From: Schizochytrium sp. TIO01
Lineage: Eukaryota; Protista; Bigyra: Labyrinthulomycetes
Direction of reading: 5' to 3'
Length of the DNA stretch: 64,000 bases
Assembly: GCA_004764695.1 (NCBI GenBank)
Contig: SMSO01000033.1
Location: forward strand, 1,116,001 to 1,180,000
This document shows positions 1 to 50,771 of this stretch, one piece after another; within the stretch, counting starts at the first letter, position 1, and every line of letters begins with the position of its first letter. A program made the translations under genes and the position numbers. Under the pieces are notes generated by a model. It was not told the DNA's origin. It saw nothing but the letters and a program-made list of their open reading frames with translations, and did not search any database.

Positions 1-719
1 GCAAATTTGACCTGTGCTTGAAGAAGACCATAGTTCCCCTCTTGGTAAAATGGGTATGCATGAAGACGATCTGCCCATGCACAGATTCCAGGATAAGATT
101 TTGAGAAATCACTACCGGTCGGCGGCTCTAGCTTGGGGTCAAGAAGACTGAGCTGGTCAATTTCTGTAATGAGTGCAATATCTGCGAGAGTAGCATATTC
201 AGTCCCGGCAATGTAAGAGGACTTGTTGAGTTGTTCCTCCATGATTTGAAGTGATGATGTAAGAATTCTCTCTTCGCGCTCCTGGGGAATCTCTACAAGA
301 TCAAACCGGGCGCTGTGCTTTGATAAGTCACCAATCTTGCTCAGAGCCAGGCGCCGGAAGAGGCCCGCAGCACCCACGCGAAGGTTGGAGTGTTTCCAAT
401 CCAGCCAGGAGTCTACAATAGCCCTAACTTGAATATCTGAGGCGGGATATAATTCCTTCTGCAGATCTTCACTTGCGTACTTTTCCACCAGATACCGCAT
501 GATGGCGTGGCTCTCGCTAAGCACGAAGCCACCGTCAATAAGGACGGGGTACTTTCCATTTGGATTGAGTTTATGGTACTCTGCCGTATTTTGCTCACCT
601 TTGCTCGAGTCAATTCTCTCCAGCGGCGCTTCAACATTCACAAGTTTACAAATCCACAACACTGCTCGAGTTGGCTGCGAGAGGTCTGCCCCCAAGACTC
701 GAACTGATCGTGATGCCAT
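1..719 (-). CDS. Glutathione S-transferase, theta-like class (3' end runs off the window)
   Basis: Absent from the ORF track because there is no stop inside the window. Manual minus-strand translation from the ATG at 719 is open to position 1: MASRSVRVLGADLSQPTRAVLWICKL...EYHKLNPNGKYPVLIDGGFVLSESHAIMRYLVEKY...LYPASDIQVRAIVDSWLDW...TLADIALITEIDQL. It shows the GST N-domain motifs (SQP.RAV, NP.GK.P.L.D..F.L.ES.AI.RYL) and the C-domain T.AD motif. Confidence 0.92.
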   Translation of the reverse strand, partial: MASRSVRVLGADLSQPTRAVLWICKLVNVEAPLERIDSSKGEQNTAEYHKLNPNGKYPVLIDGGFVLSESHAIMRYLVEKYASEDLQKELYPASDIQVRAIVDSWLDWKHSNLRVGAAGLFRRLALSKIGDLSKHSARFDLVEIPQEREERILTSSLQIMEEQLNKSSYIAGTEYATLADIALITEIDQLSLLDPKLEPPTGSDFSKSYPGICAWADRLHAYPFYQEGNYGLLQAQVKF

Positions 720-1367
720 CTTGAAAACAGAACCACGATTCTTAACTCCTCTCCTCACTTGGTTGAAGGTTTGCTTGTACAAAACGCCAAACTAAAACCT
801 CTGCAACAACTTCTGCAGACTCCTGCACTGCCACGGCAACGAGCTAAAGTCCACGTCGTCGTGGATCAAGTTGCCCTAGGTATTACCTTTCGTGCTGTTC
901 TCGCATCGGCGCAGATACATTCCTATTGACGTTTAGTCACGCCGAACCATGATCCAAGATTGAGATCTTTTCACTCTTCAAGTGCTTTATTGCTTCTTCT
1001 TTTTAAAAGATCTCTATCAACTCCTCTACTTTGCTTATGAAACGCTGTTATTTCTGGCTGGAAACAAGCTGACGCACAGACAGTGCAAAACTGGTTTTAC
1101 CTTGTTTTCCTTAATTAAGATCATGCTTCGAGTTGTGTTTGTGCGTTTATTCTTACACATGTCCCAGGAATCTCAGCAATTGAAGCGCAATAGCCGATGT
1201 TACCTGGGTATCTAGGCAGGTCCTATCTAGTACGGGTCGGTGATTCCAAGGATTTGCAGCATCGTTCTTGAACCAGGAGGATCGTGGAACCTGCAGGCTT
1301 CGCCGATTGCGGCCACTACGTCTGTTCATCAGATATATACTTCAGCGCATGATCAAATACTACAATA

Positions 1368-44529: not shown

Positions 44530-45763
44530 ACATTAAATGAAACGCGCACTTTTCGAGCTAACTAAGCCTATCTGCAGTATTATCTAAAGAAAGGAGACGG
44601 CTGCGACGGCGCCCCTTGTTCGCGCAAGCATCCCAACTCAAGGATATCCTGGGCTTCGTACCGCCACCGCGTGCCGCAAAGGCCCCGATTATAGTACCCA
44701 TCCTCAATTAAGTACCTTCGAAGGCTGGTATTTGGGACCTCCAGCAAAAAAGAGTGGCAGAAAGAAAGAGGAGAAAAGAGAAGAAAAGAAAGAGCACACC
44801 GCGTGCCGTGTGCATGCGAACCTGTGCCGAGGCCCTTTGTTCTGTGCAATAAGCTCGCCACTCGCTCAAGAAGATGGGTGCAGAAGACGAAACGCAACAC
44901 AACGCAACGCGACGGAGGCCATAGCATAGTACGCTCAGGCCCCGAGCTCTGCTCTTTTCTGCTCGGATGCCACGACGGTTGGCTCCGCTCAGGCACGTGA
45001 GGCGGAGTAATGCTTATGAAGGAGAGGAGATGTAGCACAGAGGTTAAAGCAACAAAATAAATTGAAAATTAATAGAAAGAAATCAAAGAAAACGAAGTAA
45101 AATACCCAGGTCCGGTAGGAGACCCTAGCAGCTAGCTAGCTGGCGAGAGAAAGTAATCAAAGAGAATTGGAAACTTGAACTGCATTGAAAGCTTTGAAGA
45201 GCGGGAAGGAAATAAGCAATGGAAAGAAAGGCCAGCGTGTCCCTCCTTCTTGAAGTTCTTGCCGGTATTCTGGTCTCTTGAGCAGGTCGCCAGATGGAGA
45301 ATGGGCTCAGAGAACTTATTGGCACCATCGAAAAGATTCAGGAGGCGGCTTGCTTGCAAACTCACCTTCCGAGGCTCCGTCGTATCTAGCGAGCTCGCCA
45401 GAATCTTCAAGATTCGCAGCTTTTATCGCATCTTCTTCTTCTTCTTCTTCTTCTTCGGCTCTCGCTCTTCATATATAATAAGTCTGGTAGGTAACGCGTA
45501 GGTAACTCCTAACATGGTACCTTAGACCTTTCAAGGGCCTCGGCCCATGTCCAGACTTGTATTATTTTGTCTTTTACAATTATGAAGTTACCCGTATGTG
45601 GGCATAAGTGATTGGTATGGGAGGCGGCACGGGGATAAGGGACAGCGTGTGTCCAAGTTAAAAGAAATTGGAGGGAAGAAAGAAAAGAGAAATGGGTAGC
45701 AGTTAGTAATAGTTGCATAGGGATAGAGGTGATGATGATATTATGAACGTCATAGCCCTGGCT

Positions 45764-45794
45764 ATTTTTCGGGACGTATTACGTCCCGAAAAAT
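45764..45794. repeat. Left subterminal palindrome ATTTTTCGGGACGTA-T-TACGTCCCGAAAAAT
   Basis: Perfect 15-bp arms around a 1-nt centre. A degenerate second copy lies at about 45824-45852. Confidence 0.95.
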
Positions 45795-46267
45795 CGGATA
45801 AACTTTAATTTTCCCGGTAGAGTATTTAAGGACTTATTACGTCCCGAAAAATATGTACCTACTTGAGTCATTGATCAATTCAACAGTCTAGCTCTGTTCG
45901 GGATGAAACTCGTTTAGTTTACCCTCCCCGACCTCACCTGTCCATATGTTATCATGTTCTCATGATTCTCCGATTGATAGTTGAGTTTAGGACCAAACAA
46001 TGACATTCTCAGTGGCGGTTAGGTGGTGGTTAGGTTAACAGGTATTTGACACATGGTCGTTAGGTTCTCCCACGGTACCTGTTCTACCAGACAATTAATA
46101 CTGATAAACATCAATAATATCTTGCGCCAGCATGTAGTGCCAGCAGTACCAACAAAAGTACATCATACCTTACTTCATCGTCCACTTGCTAGTCTACTTG
46201 GGATCTATCAGCACTTCCCTCAGCGAAGAGGTCCATTGGCGCTTGAGTTTAACGTCAGCTGTGTGTC

Positions 46268-49200
46268 ATGTCTCTAGATGACGTCGAGAATGACAAGGAC
46301 TCAATCTACATTTCCTCTGATGAGTCTTCTTCTGATGAAGACGAGAACGATCTCTATGAGTGTTCATCGGCAAGTACTCCTGGCCATGAAAACTGGACCT
46401 TTCAATCTTACTCCACTGAAGGCGCAAAGTACCACAGCAACCTATCTGGGTCTCAACTTGGCATGAACGCAGTCCAACTCAAGTACAATTGCTCAAGCGA
46501 ATTAATGCTCCCCAAGGTTCAACAAGAAAGTTCGGAGATTACTAAAAGGATTCGAAAGGTTCTTCGTGTTGACAATAACTACAAATTTACCAGGCTTGAT
46601 AGTTTCAAGATTTGTTTGCCGCCAGGCTGGGTGATTGCAGTTAAGGAATGGTTGAATAGTCTTAGCTCAAACGCATCTCCGCCATTTTCTATCACGGATC
46701 AAGATTTCCGTGCCTACCTTCTCGTTGAAATTTCTCTGCGAGTTGCAGGAAAGTCGTTCTCGGAGTGTCTTGAGGACCCACCAGGTCATTGGAATCTAGC
46801 CCATACGGTATCCTATTCAAAAGTTCGAAAGGCAATGAGCCTGGACAAGTCCAATCGGGCAACAAAAGGGTCACGCGAGGCTAGAGTATGCTCCTCAAGT
46901 CCGATCATCCATGAAATGGGAGGTGCTGCTCAGCGCCATTGGGTGAAGATGTTCTTTGTCCCTAAAACCACTTGGATCGATCTTGATGACGACAAGCTTC
47001 CCTATGGTTCTCCTCAGTGGGAGAATTTTGGAATTCGTACCATTCCAACGAAAACAAAAAAACAGAAACCCGTGATACATCTTGTGTGCTCTGTGGGTAC
47101 AGGTCTGCTCCTAGTACCACGGTTAGAGACTTCCCACTCACCTGTTCATAAAATTGTAAGCAAGGCAATAGATTTTCTGAATGAGGGGGAGTCAGGAGAA
47201 AGCCCTGATGCGTCTGTGTCTTCAGAGCTTCGTGTATTCATTGATCGTGGTTATCTGGCATTATCGAAACCTCAGGATATGGATCGTGCAACAAACATAA
47301 CTCAAATTCTTCAGTCAAAGGGAGTCAAATTTCTTGGAACTTGTCGCAAGACCTCGTCATTCCCGTTTATAGATGTTGAAGGACCAGTTCCTGCTACGCC
47401 TGTGAGGGGAAGTCAAACTATCATTAACAGGAATGGCCGTCGAAGCACCTACACCGCTCAAAGATACCAGAATGGCGATTTTGTTGCTGCGATGATGATG
47501 CGTCACGGTGCGGGAAAGCATAGAGTTGCACAACTCATCACGAACGACCGTTGTTTGGCTGACCAAGTTTGGAGTTACGAAGTACTTCCTGCTGGAGTAG
47601 ATTGGAACTCACCAGGTGGTGTAAAGCGCGTTCCACATGCTGAGATTGAGATAGAGCCGTGTGACATGAGTACATATAAGATGAAGGCACAAGCTAATCA
47701 TAAAATTAACCTTGTGAACGCCAATATCTTCTCAATGACAATTTCCCAAAGAACACCTGACTGGTTTATGGCTCGGCAATTTAGAATTACAAGCACCGGT
47801 GCTTTTACCTGTATCAACTTTAAAAATGCTCCATTCGTTCATTCGGATGAGCTTATGGCCTTACACCACGATGTGAAATCGTTCGCTTGTCTTGACCCGC
47901 AACGAATTATCTCATTATTCCCCCGTCCTAATAAGCGTTCTTCTTATTCATCTGAAGGAGCTCAGAAGCAATATAAAAGGAAGCGTCAAGGGGAGGGTCT
48001 TATTCTTGAATATACATACTGGATGCAACGTATGAACAAAAATGAGCTTATCCAAAAGTTACTTTCTTTGGATGTAGGTGCAAAGACTGATGGCAAAAAG
48101 ATCGAACTAGCCAAGCGGATCGTAGACATCCTATCAAGAACTATAGATCATGAAACGGTCTCAAACGGAGAACTATCTTCCTTACAGGAAGACATACACC
48201 CTCAGCATGCATCTCAGGAGTCCACTACTCAAGACCTGCTGGAAATGAGTGACAGTAGTGACATTGGGGACAGCTTTCCCTTGCACAATTCTGAAACGAT
48301 TGATGATAACCATACATGCACTTTCGAGGAACGCCAGAAATCATTTCTTAGAACAATCACACCAAGTTGGTTTATGAAGCCTATTCAAAATGGGTTTTCG
48401 AATCATAAAAACCCACTGGCTTTGGGGATTGAAAATGAGGCAGACGTGGCGAAAGATCTTTCCAGATGGGTTAAGAAAGCAAGTTCCAATAAATTCTGTA
48501 TTCTCCAGCTACGCAAATATGGTCTGATTATTAATCGGGAAGTCCAATTTGTAGCAGACTCACCCGACGGTGCAGCTGTTCTTTTGAGGAATACAGAGCT
48601 AGAAGGAAACAATTTTGTTATAGATGATGTATTTGCCTTAGAAATCAAAACAAGTACAAATGCCAAAACTATAGATGAGTTAAAGTCTCGAGTTGCTGGT
48701 CAGAGTGCGTGGCACGAATGCAAATGTGGAACAAGTGAGTTCGAGTCGTTAGTCCCAAATCCGTCGTTTCGAACTCAGTGTATCCATCATGCAGCTACTT
48801 TAGATGTCCCTTACACCCTCCTTATATATGCCACAACTGAGGAAATCATGCAAGGAGTGCTAATCAAAGTCTCATGTGCCCAGCGCCAGTCATGGCGTGA
48901 GTATTTCAAAGCGTTGAGTGATGAATACATGGGCTTTGCTTATGGCAATCAACTTGGTAGGTTTCCTCGTTTTGCACCAGACCAATCACCAGACTGGGGT
49001 TATGCTGTGGATTTACACAGTGCCGAACTCGCTTTGCAGCTTTGGCGGAGGCATAGTGACGACGTGCTGGTCAACGGAACCCCACCGCCTTGCAAACGCC
49101 TACTGCCTTTGACTGTTAGTGTCTGGAATAAGATGATGGGCGGAGTTGATATCACTAGAAAAACTATCAATGGAGCGAGCATTCGTACTTCAAAGCTGAC

Positions 49201-49783
49201 TCCTAATGCTTTGGTTTGTTTAACATTCATTGACTATATTTTATACAACTCGTTTCGAGCGTATCAGCTCCTCTCAATGGAGCATCGGAACCTCACATCG
49301 AAGTGTAAAACAATTACGGAATGGTCAATGCTACGCAAAAATCTGTGCTGCTATAGAGGCTATCTAAGTAGTCTCGCAGAAGAAATTAGGGTTGTCTCAA
49401 TGGAATCCCTTTACCCATTTGACAATACTTGTTCCATGTCTGACATAGAATTCTGCTGGAGAGCAACTGATAACACCATTTCGCCTACTTCTACAGCCTC
49501 GCTAGAATCGCCGCAACAGTATCAATACAGTAAGTCACGACTCCCAGAACTTCTACAAACTCGTTTAGTTGGACAGCATGAATGCGTGGGCAAGTTCAAG
49601 AAGAGGGGAGCCTGCATTATGTGTTGTGTTGATTGCGAACGGGGATCGGCGCCAGACCATCCATATCGTAATCCACGGAAGACCACTCGATGGTGCCAAA
49701 CTTGCAATGCTTACATTTGTAAGCATTGCAATATCAAATTTCATAGCGAGGAGCAAATTACGATTCCTCATTTCCATACATAA
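46268..49783 (+). CDS. piggyBac-like DDD transposase with an inserted YqaJ/lambda-exonuclease-like PD-(D/E)XK domain, a SAP-like motif and a C-terminal Cys-rich domain
   Basis: 1171 aa. Acidic N-terminus. piggyBac-like core: WIDLDDDKL (D240), VFIDRGY (D326), KGVKFLGTCRK, WNKMMGGVD (D961), FIDYILYNSFRAY. C-terminal H..CIMC...RKTTRWCQTCNAYICKHCNIKFH. Inserted nuclease: QRTPDWFMARQFRITST, GIENE, GLIINREVQFVADSPDG, LEIKT, QCIHH. Confidence 0.88.
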   Translation: MSLDDVENDKDSIYISSDESSSDEDENDLYECSSASTPGHENWTFQSYSTEGAKYHSNLSGSQLGMNAVQLKYNCSSELMLPKVQQESSEITKRIRKVLRVDNNYKFTRLDSFKICLPPGWVIAVKEWLNSLSSNASPPFSITDQDFRAYLLVEISLRVAGKSFSECLEDPPGHWNLAHTVSYSKVRKAMSLDKSNRATKGSREARVCSSSPIIHEMGGAAQRHWVKMFFVPKTTWIDLDDDKLPYGSPQWENFGIRTIPTKTKKQKPVIHLVCSVGTGLLLVPRLETSHSPVHKIVSKAIDFLNEGESGESPDASVSSELRVFIDRGYLALSKPQDMDRATNITQILQSKGVKFLGTCRKTSSFPFIDVEGPVPATPVRGSQTIINRNGRRSTYTAQRYQNGDFVAAMMMRHGAGKHRVAQLITNDRCLADQVWSYEVLPAGVDWNSPGGVKRVPHAEIEIEPCDMSTYKMKAQANHKINLVNANIFSMTISQRTPDWFMARQFRITSTGAFTCINFKNAPFVHSDELMALHHDVKSFACLDPQRIISLFPRPNKRSSYSSEGAQKQYKRKRQGEGLILEYTYWMQRMNKNELIQKLLSLDVGAKTDGKKIELAKRIVDILSRTIDHETVSNGELSSLQEDIHPQHASQESTTQDLLEMSDSSDIGDSFPLHNSETIDDNHTCTFEERQKSFLRTITPSWFMKPIQNGFSNHKNPLALGIENEADVAKDLSRWVKKASSNKFCILQLRKYGLIINREVQFVADSPDGAAVLLRNTELEGNNFVIDDVFALEIKTSTNAKTIDELKSRVAGQSAWHECKCGTSEFESLVPNPSFRTQCIHHAATLDVPYTLLIYATTEEIMQGVLIKVSCAQRQSWREYFKALSDEYMGFAYGNQLGRFPRFAPDQSPDWGYAVDLHSAELALQLWRRHSDDVLVNGTPPPCKRLLPLTVSVWNKMMGGVDITRKTINGASIRTSKLTPNALVCLTFIDYILYNSFRAYQLLSMEHRNLTSKCKTITEWSMLRKNLCCYRGYLSSLAEEIRVVSMESLYPFDNTCSMSDIEFCWRATDNTISPTSTASLESPQQYQYSKSRLPELLQTRLVGQHECVGKFKKRGACIMCCVDCERGSAPDHPYRNPRKTTRWCQTCNAYICKHCNIKFHSEEQITIPHFHT

Positions 49784-49976
49784 AAATTATCCACACAAAA
49801 AATTAATATTACATTTAGCTTATATAAAATCTTCATTTATCGCGAAATCTTCATCTTTAGATGTTTCTCCGACTTGAGCAACGCAAAAATAAACTACTAT
49901 TGTTTATATTAACTAAACTATTAAACTAACCAAAATACCCAAACTCTTATACGTTTTCGCTAATGCAAAGTTCAGT

Positions 49977-50003
49977 TTTTCAGGACGTATTACGTCCTGA
50001 AAA
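49977..50003. repeat. Right subterminal palindrome TTTTCAGGACGTA-T-TACGTCCTGAAAA
   Basis: Perfect 13-bp arms around a 1-nt centre; homologous to the left palindrome with a compensatory base-pair change. Confidence 0.95.
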
Positions 50004-50771
50004 TCTAAAGGCCTATTTGCCCTATTAGGCCGTTTTATCGAGGTTGTGAGCCAATTTTTGGACGAGTAGCGTGAGCTCAATACGCTTGCTTCTGCAAAGA
50101 AATCGTGCTCAGTTTAGGGAAACAGTTGTTTCAACATGATCATACAATCAAATTTACGATTTTAGATCTTTACAGGGTTTTCTGGCGATTTTAGTCAAAA
50201 ATATTTTGCGGACATAATTCGGGACATTTTGAATTTAGCCAGGGATAGAGTTTTTTTGTTTTTTTTTTAAAGGTCAGTAATGAGAAAGAAAGCACAGCGA
50301 CAAGAAAGAAGGCAATACTCCAACTAATCGCTCGACTCGCCAGCTCGACGCGACAGCGCTTTCCGACCGCCTCGAGGGAGGTCGTCGCGAGGTCTGCTGT
50401 TTGGCAGAGAGGATCTGATTCTCTCCAATCCCGATATCGACTTGAACAGCCGCGTCCTCAGGGACCGTAGCTGTACTCGTTGCCACCGCTGCTGTGGCGG
50501 TGCCGCTCTTCGTTAACCATCTCGTCAGCTGATTAGCGCGAGATTCCTATAGTTCTGCATATATAGGTGGCTAGTTATATTTGAAGAAGAAGGGCAGCAC
50601 GTCCTCGTACTTCTTCGTCCCTGCATCCAAACCTTGCTCGTGTTTCTTACCTAGGTTCACGGAGTAATCATATATATATCTAGCAGATATCTCTCAAGCC
50701 AGCCGTTGTTATAGACAGACGTTTGACACATCCTTCATATATTTCATTAATTCGCTAGAAGCCCAAGCAAA

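Follow-up and report, generated by a model that had tools for sequence, protein, structure and literature searches.

The window analysed here, a 64,000-nucleotide stretch of the Schizochytrium sp. TIO01 genome (assembly GCA_004764695.1, contig SMSO01000033.1, positions 1,116,001 to 1,180,000 of the forward strand), very probably harbors an autonomous, recently active cut-and-paste transposon of the piggyBac superfamily, the transposase of which has a three-aspartate (DDD) catalytic core with a nested lambda-exonuclease/YqaJ-type nuclease and a SAP-like motif. This identification draws on the architecture of the protein, the conservation of its two catalytic centres and their tendency to be lost jointly, the ends of the element, its target-site duplications and the polymorphism of its insertion. 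The transposase is encoded by an uninterrupted open reading frame (ORF) of 1171 codons on the plus strand (window positions 46268-49783). Sequence profiles and predicted structures support the view that it represents a large, unannotated lineage of piggyBac transposases that crosses eukaryotic supergroups and carries a nested, conserved nuclease of the putative 5'-to-3' exonuclease type.

The protein family was delineated by searching 1.84 billion protein representatives with a profile built from paralogues in the same genome. It comprised 955 representatives at E<=1e-3, of which 70 also passed E<=1e-30, and many family members were 1000-1400 residues long and spanned the whole profile. A search for the same architecture in other protists had been proposed in the original prediction, which was made from the letters of the window, and the named members indeed came from several groups: the diatoms Skeletonema menzelii and S. 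dohrnii, the thraustochytrid Hondaea fermentalgiana, the rhizarian Plasmodiophora brassicae and the ichthyosporean Chromosphaera perkinsii. The annotation of every named member reads hypothetical or 'SAP domain-containing'. The family profile was made by aligning 39 long members that share 17-34% identity with the window protein. Against PDB sequences, its match to piggyBat transposase (9c0f_C, E 6.5e-11) comprised three collinear segments located on either side of the insert: profile positions 14-360 with piggyBat 35-352 (D1, D2 and GTxRK), 840-899 with 405-464 (YN..GVD), and 986-1057 with 516-577 (the Cys-rich domain). Trichoplusia ni piggyBac (6x67_C) was matched at 840-930 with 433-534 (E 2.9e-7). 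The same profile matched the lambda-exonuclease homologue LHK-Exo (3syy, E 2.6e-5; 464-525 with 2-64), the Mimivirus R354 nuclease (E 0.0046; 642-689 with 112-161) and the SAP domain of Ku70 (E 7.7e-8; profile 522-588). Pfam searches with the 39 members individually revealed PF13843 in four, zf-Tnp_2 in three, YqaJ (PF09588) in one (E 0.0062), and SAP at the aligned position in 11 (best E 2.2e-10); in the homologue P0040, PF13843 reached 40.7 bits against a cut-off of 22.4. The nearest Atlas clusters of the window protein were YqaJ, with a score of only 0.82.

Columns conserved in at least 90% of the 39 homologues include the aspartates D240, D326 and D961, the nuclease positions Q494, W499, R503, G720, E724, S765, D767, E792, K794, R835 and Q837, and the C-terminal residues C1116, C1119, C1143, C1146, C1151, C1154 and H1159. 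The W953-N954 pair, which in piggyBac contacts the hairpin, is also conserved in this alignment. The piggyBac motif series can be followed along the window protein, with D240 in LDDDK, D326 in FIDRGY, then FLGTCRK, D961 in WNKMMGGVD, and a Cys/His-rich tail. This series had been claimed in the original prediction, and all residues numbered there are present and conserved family-wide; the spacings given there, 86 residues between D1 and D2 and 635 between D2 and D3, were obtained again.

An AlphaFold2 model of the whole protein, built with the 39-sequence alignment, had a mean predicted local distance difference test (pLDDT) score of 82.4 and a predicted template modelling score of 0.78, with disorder only in residues 1-40, 556-577, 629-677 and 1050-1088. 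Foldseek ranked the piggyBac strand-transfer complex first among PDB structures (6x67_C, E 6.2e-6), with Tn5, piggyBat and lambda exonuclease next in that order. VIA-align superposed 6x67_C on the model with Z 23.9 and a root-mean-square deviation of 3.8 A over 373 residues, pairing model residues 85..1047 with chain residues 117..517, while piggyBat gave Z 20.2 with the whole model. Because residues 117-432 of the chain number only 316, at least 57 of the aligned residues lie past the insert, and one rigid superposition therefore spans both halves, as had been anticipated if the flanking parts form one modelled piggyBac core. Minimal integrase cores, such as that of HIV integrase (model 233..1010), aligned only with both halves in use. 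From these superpositions we infer that D240, D326 and D961 belong to one RNase H site.

The nested domain carries the nuclease motifs Q494-R-T-P-D-W499-x3-R503-x2-R-I-T-S, G720-x3-E724, S765-P-D767-G, E792-I-K794 and R835-x-Q837. Lambda exonuclease (3slp_A) aligned with the whole model at Z 12.1, covering 207 of its 226 residues and model residues 456..928. A model of the insert alone (residues 458-940, pLDDT 84.9) was compared with 48,161 representative PDB chains without a prefilter, and lambda exonuclease was again the top match (Z 13.1, root-mean-square deviation 3.4, 201/226 residues). It was followed by LHK-Exo (3syy_A, Z 12.3), R354 (11.2), a Haemophilus phage exonuclease (9.0) and the Epstein-Barr virus alkaline nuclease (8.6). 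The N-terminal motif Q-R-T-x-x-W-x3-R-x4-T-(A/S)-S is present in the segment that the profile aligns with LHK-Exo, and among 76 members aligned to the family model, 72-74 retain each of its residues Q494, W499 and R503. R503 is the residue that we take to be the counterpart of R28, which binds the 5' phosphate in lambda exonuclease. The profile matches to piggyBat, piggyBac and LHK-Exo and the structural Z scores against piggyBac and lambda exonuclease lie far above what chance would produce. The predicted YqaJ/lambda-exonuclease insert with intact PD-(D/E)XK residues is thus borne out by profile and structure alike, with one correction: the insert also carries a SAP-like motif, of helix-extended-helix form and with disordered loops on either side. 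In the window protein alone, the Pfam score of SAP (PF02037) was below significance, and SAP structures matched residues 113-177 of the insert model weakly (Z 5.3-5.4).

The nuclease has the beta insertion domain on its N-terminal side and the D961 helix on its C-terminal side. Strand 5 of piggyBac is followed by an insertion domain of three beta strands (residues 372-433), and contacts with the TTAA hairpin loop are made by Y439 and N440, which shortly precede G444-G445 and D447 (PMC7351741). In the window protein the all-beta domain ends at residue 439 and piggyBac-like sequence resumes at about P947, aligned with P433 of piggyBac and followed by W953-N954 and D961, so that the nuclease was spliced in at the end of a pre-existing insertion domain. 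It is anchored about 6-8 residues before W953-N954, the piggyBac counterpart of which touches the flanking tetranucleotide hairpin.

Conservation of the catalytic residues was counted in the listed matches of the family search, aligned to the family model and reduced to representatives at most 50% identical to each other. Of the DDD residues, D1 was kept in 64/65, D2 in 68/70 and D3 in 117/123; of the PD-(D/E)XK triad, D767 was kept in 104/107, E792 in 107/110 and K794 in 105/110. The other nuclease residues were retained to a similar extent: R503 in 72/76, E724 in 93/94, S765 in 105/107 and Q837 in 109/112. The original prediction had allowed that other members might lack the insert or show decayed PD-(D/E)XK residues, but most keep both. 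Both triads were intact in 42 of the 47 representatives that cover all six catalytic positions and both were lost in three, while the PD-(D/E)XK triad alone was lost in one and D2 alone in one. Members with lost catalytic residues include three paralogues from the same genome, described below. This conservation shows that selection acts on both catalytic sites. The joint pattern suggests that the two putative centres work together, an association that is no formal statistical test since the sequences share ancestry. It is very unlikely that the nuclease domain does not cut and instead serves the transposase as a DNA-binding, multimerisation or regulatory module. The SAP-like DNA-binding motif within it would suit such a role, catalytically dead PD-(D/E)XK domains are common in general, and cleavage by this domain is predicted from sequence; nevertheless, the catalytic and phosphate-pocket residues are 94-99% conserved despite the low overall identity of the family, which would not be expected of a purely structural module.

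The insert adjoins both the DDD active site and the positions with which piggyBac grips the tetranucleotide of the flank, a location that could also be read in another way, namely that the nested PD-(D/E)XK domain is a TnsA-like endonuclease, which would cut the second (5', non-transferred) strand and replace or supplement the hairpin step. A division of labour between PD-(D/E)XK and DDE enzymes is known in Tn7, and two centres that are kept or lost together would fit it. We nonetheless regard this as unlikely. The best matches in both structure and sequence are processive 5'-to-3' exonucleases (lambda exonuclease and LHK-Exo) and not restriction-type endonucleases, the conservation of R503, S765 and Q837 suggests binding of a ready-made 5'-phosphorylated end, and the WN pair that contacts the hairpin in piggyBac is conserved too.

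Exonucleases of the lambda type use R28, S117 and Q157 as a pocket for the 5'-phosphorylated end of a duplex and digest that strand in the 5'-to-3' direction; the counterparts of these residues, R503, S765 and Q837, are conserved in the family. In the mechanism that we propose, the DDD centre would nick the 3' ends, form and open hairpins, and carry out strand transfer at a 4-bp NTAN target, the central TA of which would be read as in piggyBac. DDD cleavage would leave the flank strands with 5' phosphates immediately next to the place where the nuclease is inserted, and the nested nuclease would take such a 5'-phosphorylated end and digest it 5' to 3', most likely on the donor flanks. The break could thereby escape simple re-ligation of its complementary 4-nt overhangs and enter homologous repair, by which the element would be restored at the donor site. 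The conserved phosphate pocket, together with the 5' phosphates expected beside the insertion point, favors such a role in end resection, and donor-flank resection followed by homologous repair is the role that we tentatively prefer among those considered. The next option is trimming or opening of a transposon-end intermediate, either a hairpin or a 5' overhang. It is possible, if somewhat doubtful, that by resecting the donor or replacing the hairpin step the nested exonuclease converts seamless cut-and-paste transposition into a mode in which homologous repair rebuilds the element at the donor site and copies are thereby gained. If that is true, a single natural polypeptide would work as a 'cut, resect and integrate' machine, distributed across stramenopiles, Rhizaria and Holozoa and unrecognised in public annotation.

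The 64-Mb genome (37 contigs) contains seven copies with 100% identical ORFs and one older copy at 97%. Comparison of their flanks revealed that identity begins and ends at the same bases in all seven, which defines an element of 4489 bp. The ends of the window element are of the form 5'-CCC...GGG-3', as expected of the piggyBac superfamily, and so are those of a sister element described below. The seven copies are bordered by the 4-bp duplications ATAT, TTAT, TTAA, CTAA, TTAT, ATAG (the window copy) and TTAG. Together with that of the sister element, they take the form NTAN, with a central TA in 8/8 and free outer bases. The strict TTAA rule of piggyBac does not hold, as TTAA is found in only one of the seven duplications, and NTAN represents a relaxed version of it. 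A second, similar copy of the left subterminal palindrome was found by repeat search at 45825-45853. When both element ends were searched in the genome, only the seven full copies, the older copy and two fragments were recovered, with no family of miniature inverted-repeat transposable elements. Two identical copies lie in the same orientation about 80 kb apart on one contig (G000 C24:5429136-5432648 and C24:5508286-5511798), a pair that could reflect local hopping.

The window insertion is polymorphic. A contig from a public run of a different study (X4) spans 45300-45755 and 50276-50700 with 27 letters between them. A T-rich tract lies directly 3' of the right duplication, at 50249-50275, and because the 27-letter gap equals its length, the X4 contig represents an empty site with a single ATAG. 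The tract was masked as a repeat in contig mapping, and the empty-site joint is hence missing from the joint table. Across 45300-50700, the ratio of element to flank depth was about 10-20-fold in run X2 and about 4-6-fold in X4, and the copy number of the element therefore differs between the samples, which suggests ongoing copy-number change between strains. In two RNA-like runs (X10 and X13), depth was 380 and 38 over a neighbouring gene, 12 and 7 over the element and 0 over intergenic DNA. Contigs from these runs are collinear with the entire ORF and fade soon past the stop codon, which suggests that the ORF is transcribed without an intron. With seven identical copies, a polymorphic insertion and probable transcripts, the element looks alive, that is, currently or very recently active.

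The same genome contains full-length diverged paralogues with 21-40% identity to the window protein. The closest is encoded by the sister element at L009:939-5327, 4389 bp long, the protein of which is 40% identical. This element starts with CCCTGGATA, ends with TATCCAGGG, is bordered by a CTAA duplication and has CCCTGG.TA ends in common with the window element. Its subterminal palindromes lie in places corresponding to those of the window element but differ from them in sequence (TTGTCTACG...CGTAGACAA), a divergence which suggests that the protein and its binding sites co-evolved. Three further paralogues on other contigs (L011:1399-5133, L013:2601-6518 and L014:2890-6588) are 21-33% identical, have open frames of 1232-1305 residues and no longer have a full set of catalytic residues in at least one of the two nuclease centres. 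A pair of inverted repeats with a target duplication was sought around all three and none was found; all are candidate domesticated or immobilised descendants of the family of the window element. That the window ORF is itself a domesticated host gene or a decaying relic, as these long frames with altered catalytic residues and no detectable ends might suggest, is hardly credible: the window copy has perfect inverted repeats and target duplications, it is one of seven identical copies at separate loci, its locus is polymorphic and copy depth varies between samples. The different flanks of the seven copies also rule out assembly duplication of one locus.

Canonical piggyBac-type ORFs are present in this genome as well: L015, L016 and L017 (C31:7606601-7607800, C13:2563422-2564621 and C13:6427843-6428133). 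Two of the three have an uninterrupted full-length PF13843 match and hence lack the nuclease insert. A free-standing ORF of 407 residues (L018:1285-2508, minus strand) contains a full YqaJ domain (PF09588, E 4.4e-22). Aligned by hhalign with the single-sequence piggyBac ORF L015 and YqaJ ORF L018, which are weak templates, the family alignment gave probabilities of 24% and 0.7%, respectively, values that with such templates do not speak against the assignment.

Several points weigh against the identification proposed here. The original prediction expected Pfam searches on pieces of the window protein to return DDE_Tnp_1_7 and YqaJ; searched whole and in three pieces, it matched neither a transposase nor a nuclease and gave only a sub-threshold B-box, and phmmer found no match to it among PDB sequences. 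A five-sequence profile from its own genome gave nothing credible among PDB sequences, and a word-indexed protein search with the window protein recovered only itself. The domain assignment accordingly depends on the 39-member family profile and the predicted model, and the convergence of the three aspartates and the distance between the two sites, as modelled, follow from superpositions. The exonuclease role of the nested domain is assigned by analogy. Lambda exonuclease and LHK-Exo are toroidal trimers, while piggyBac is a dimer, and the nested domain therefore cannot act in quite the way of lambda exonuclease. As to mobility, the X4 site may be ancestrally empty as opposed to emptied by excision, runs X10 and X13 are taken to be RNA by guesswork, and carried-over DNA of a multicopy element could account for their reads.

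Features of the transposon and its transposase (positions within the window; residue numbers refer to the 1171-residue protein)
Feature	Position	Strand	Basis
Whole transposon, 4489 bp, single ORF	45756..50244	+	Seven genome copies identical across exactly this span, flanks differ
Left target-site duplication, ATAG	45752..45755	.	Read directly; matching 4 bp at 50245-50248
Left terminal inverted repeat, CCCTGGCTA, 9 bp	45756..45764	+	Read in sequence
Left subterminal perfect palindrome, 15-nt arms	45764..45794	.	Repeat search
Transposase ORF, 1171 aa, intronless	46268..49783	+	ORF list; collinear contigs from two probably-RNA runs
Helical dimerisation/DNA-binding domain, N-terminal half, aa ~85-232	46520..46963	+	Superposition on 6x67_C; profile on piggyBat 35-352
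RNase H-like core, first part, aa 233-366	46964..47365	+	Profile alignment to piggyBat
Predicted catalytic D240	46985-46987	+	Aligned with D of piggyBat 'LDE'
Predicted catalytic D326	47243-47245	+	Aligned with D of piggyBat 'MDNYY'
All-beta insertion domain, aa 367-439	47366..47584	+	Model strands; topological place of piggyBac 372-433 (PMC7351741)
Lambda-exonuclease/YqaJ-type PD-(D/E)XK nuclease, aa 456-928	47633..49051	+	Superposition; profile
SAP-like helix-extended-helix motif inside the nuclease, aa ~571-631	47978..48160	+	Homologues; profile
Nuclease key residues R503, E724, S765, Q837	within 47633..49051	+	Conservation counts
Nuclease triad D767, E792, K794	48566-48568, 48641-48643, 48647-48649	+	Conservation counts
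RNase H core, last part, and helical domain, C-terminal half, aa 942-1047	49091..49408	+	Profile: piggyBat 405-464, piggyBac 433-534
W953-N954 and predicted catalytic D961 (YN..GGVD motif)	within 49091..49408; D961 at 49148-49150	+	Profile alignment
C-terminal Cys-rich domain, aa 1112-1160	49601..49747	+	Aligned with piggyBat 516-577; zf-Tnp_2 in 3/39 homologues
Right subterminal palindrome, 19-nt arms, 89% complementary	49971..50009	.	Repeat search
Right terminal inverted repeat, TAGCCAGGG, 9 bp	50236..50244	+	Read in sequence
Right target-site duplication, ATAG	50245..50248	.	Read directly

The first 40 residues of the protein (46268-46387) are acidic, Ser-rich and disordered (pLDDT about 30), resembling the disordered N-terminus of piggyBac, and at residue 41 a small beta element begins, modelled with confidence, in which W43 is invariant. 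The neighbours of the element in the window are ordinary eukaryotic genes with long open frames, encoding a kinesin, Vps39, PP2C, an aspartyl protease and a glycosyltransferase.

PiggyBac is among the best-understood and most used eukaryotic transposases, with the hallmark of seamless excision without end-processing helper enzymes. A large natural lineage appears to extend this chemistry by placing a conserved active site of the lambda-exonuclease type a few residues from the putative hairpin-binding site. The window element thus provides a testable system for the coupling of DNA breakage to resection and repair-pathway choice, and transposase tools that process DNA ends by themselves might be developed from it. 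The family also supplies an identity for hundreds of proteins annotated as 'hypothetical' or 'SAP domain-containing'.

Compared with canonical piggyBac and piggyBat (6x67 and 9c0f; PF13843 plus PF13842), the window protein has the same domain order and fold. Its DDD residues stand in the same motifs, LD(E/D), D(N/R)xY, GTxR/K and (Y/W)N..GGVD, and it also shares the beta insertion domain that follows strand 5 and the Cys-rich domain at the C terminus; the elements have in common the CCC...GGG ends and the 4-bp target duplication with a central TA. Unlike piggyBac, the window protein has about 500 extra residues, comprising the nuclease and the SAP-like motif, between the insertion domain and the D3 helix, and it is too diverged for PF13843; its element uses the relaxed NTAN target and has inverted repeats of only 9 bp. 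In Tn7, the PD-(D/E)XK nuclease TnsA and the DDE enzyme TnsB cooperate at the same transposon end. Tn7 differs from the window element, however, in being bacterial and in dividing the two activities between two polypeptides, and TnsA is restriction-endonuclease-like and not of the lambda-exonuclease type.

The original prediction suggested that the element may define a poorly described or undescribed lineage, a claim that stands in part: no description of a piggyBac element with a core-nested nuclease of the lambda-exonuclease type and a SAP-like motif was found in the literature searched (Repbase and Dfam lay outside the search), whereas the addition of a nuclease to a transposase is already known in principle from Dada, KolobokE and ISL2EU. 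In Dada, a DEDDy exonuclease is nested in a DDE transposase (PMC3706591). As in the window protein, the exonuclease lies inside the DDE/D catalytic core after the second Asp and is thought to process the ends made by transposition, but Dada belongs to another transposon superfamily and its nuclease has another fold, the DEDDy type acting 3' to 5' and the lambda-exonuclease type 5' to 3'. KolobokE has a fused lambda-exo-like nuclease (PMC9587614), which is located downstream of the transposase domain, in contrast to the core-nested nuclease of the window protein. Kolobok elements also make 4-bp duplications, TTAA; assignment of the window element to this superfamily was nevertheless rejected, since its ends are CCC..GGG and not the 5'-RR..YY-3' of Kolobok and its fold and profile are those of piggyBac, whereas the Kolobok core has the C/DxxH signature of the hAT/P/MuDR group. 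ISL2EU elements carry a separate YqaJ ORF (PMC4122938). They thus represent recruitment of the same nuclease family by a eukaryotic DNA transposon, but belong to a PIF/Harbinger-related superfamily and encode the nuclease as a separate gene product, unlike the window element, in which it is nested within the transposase core.

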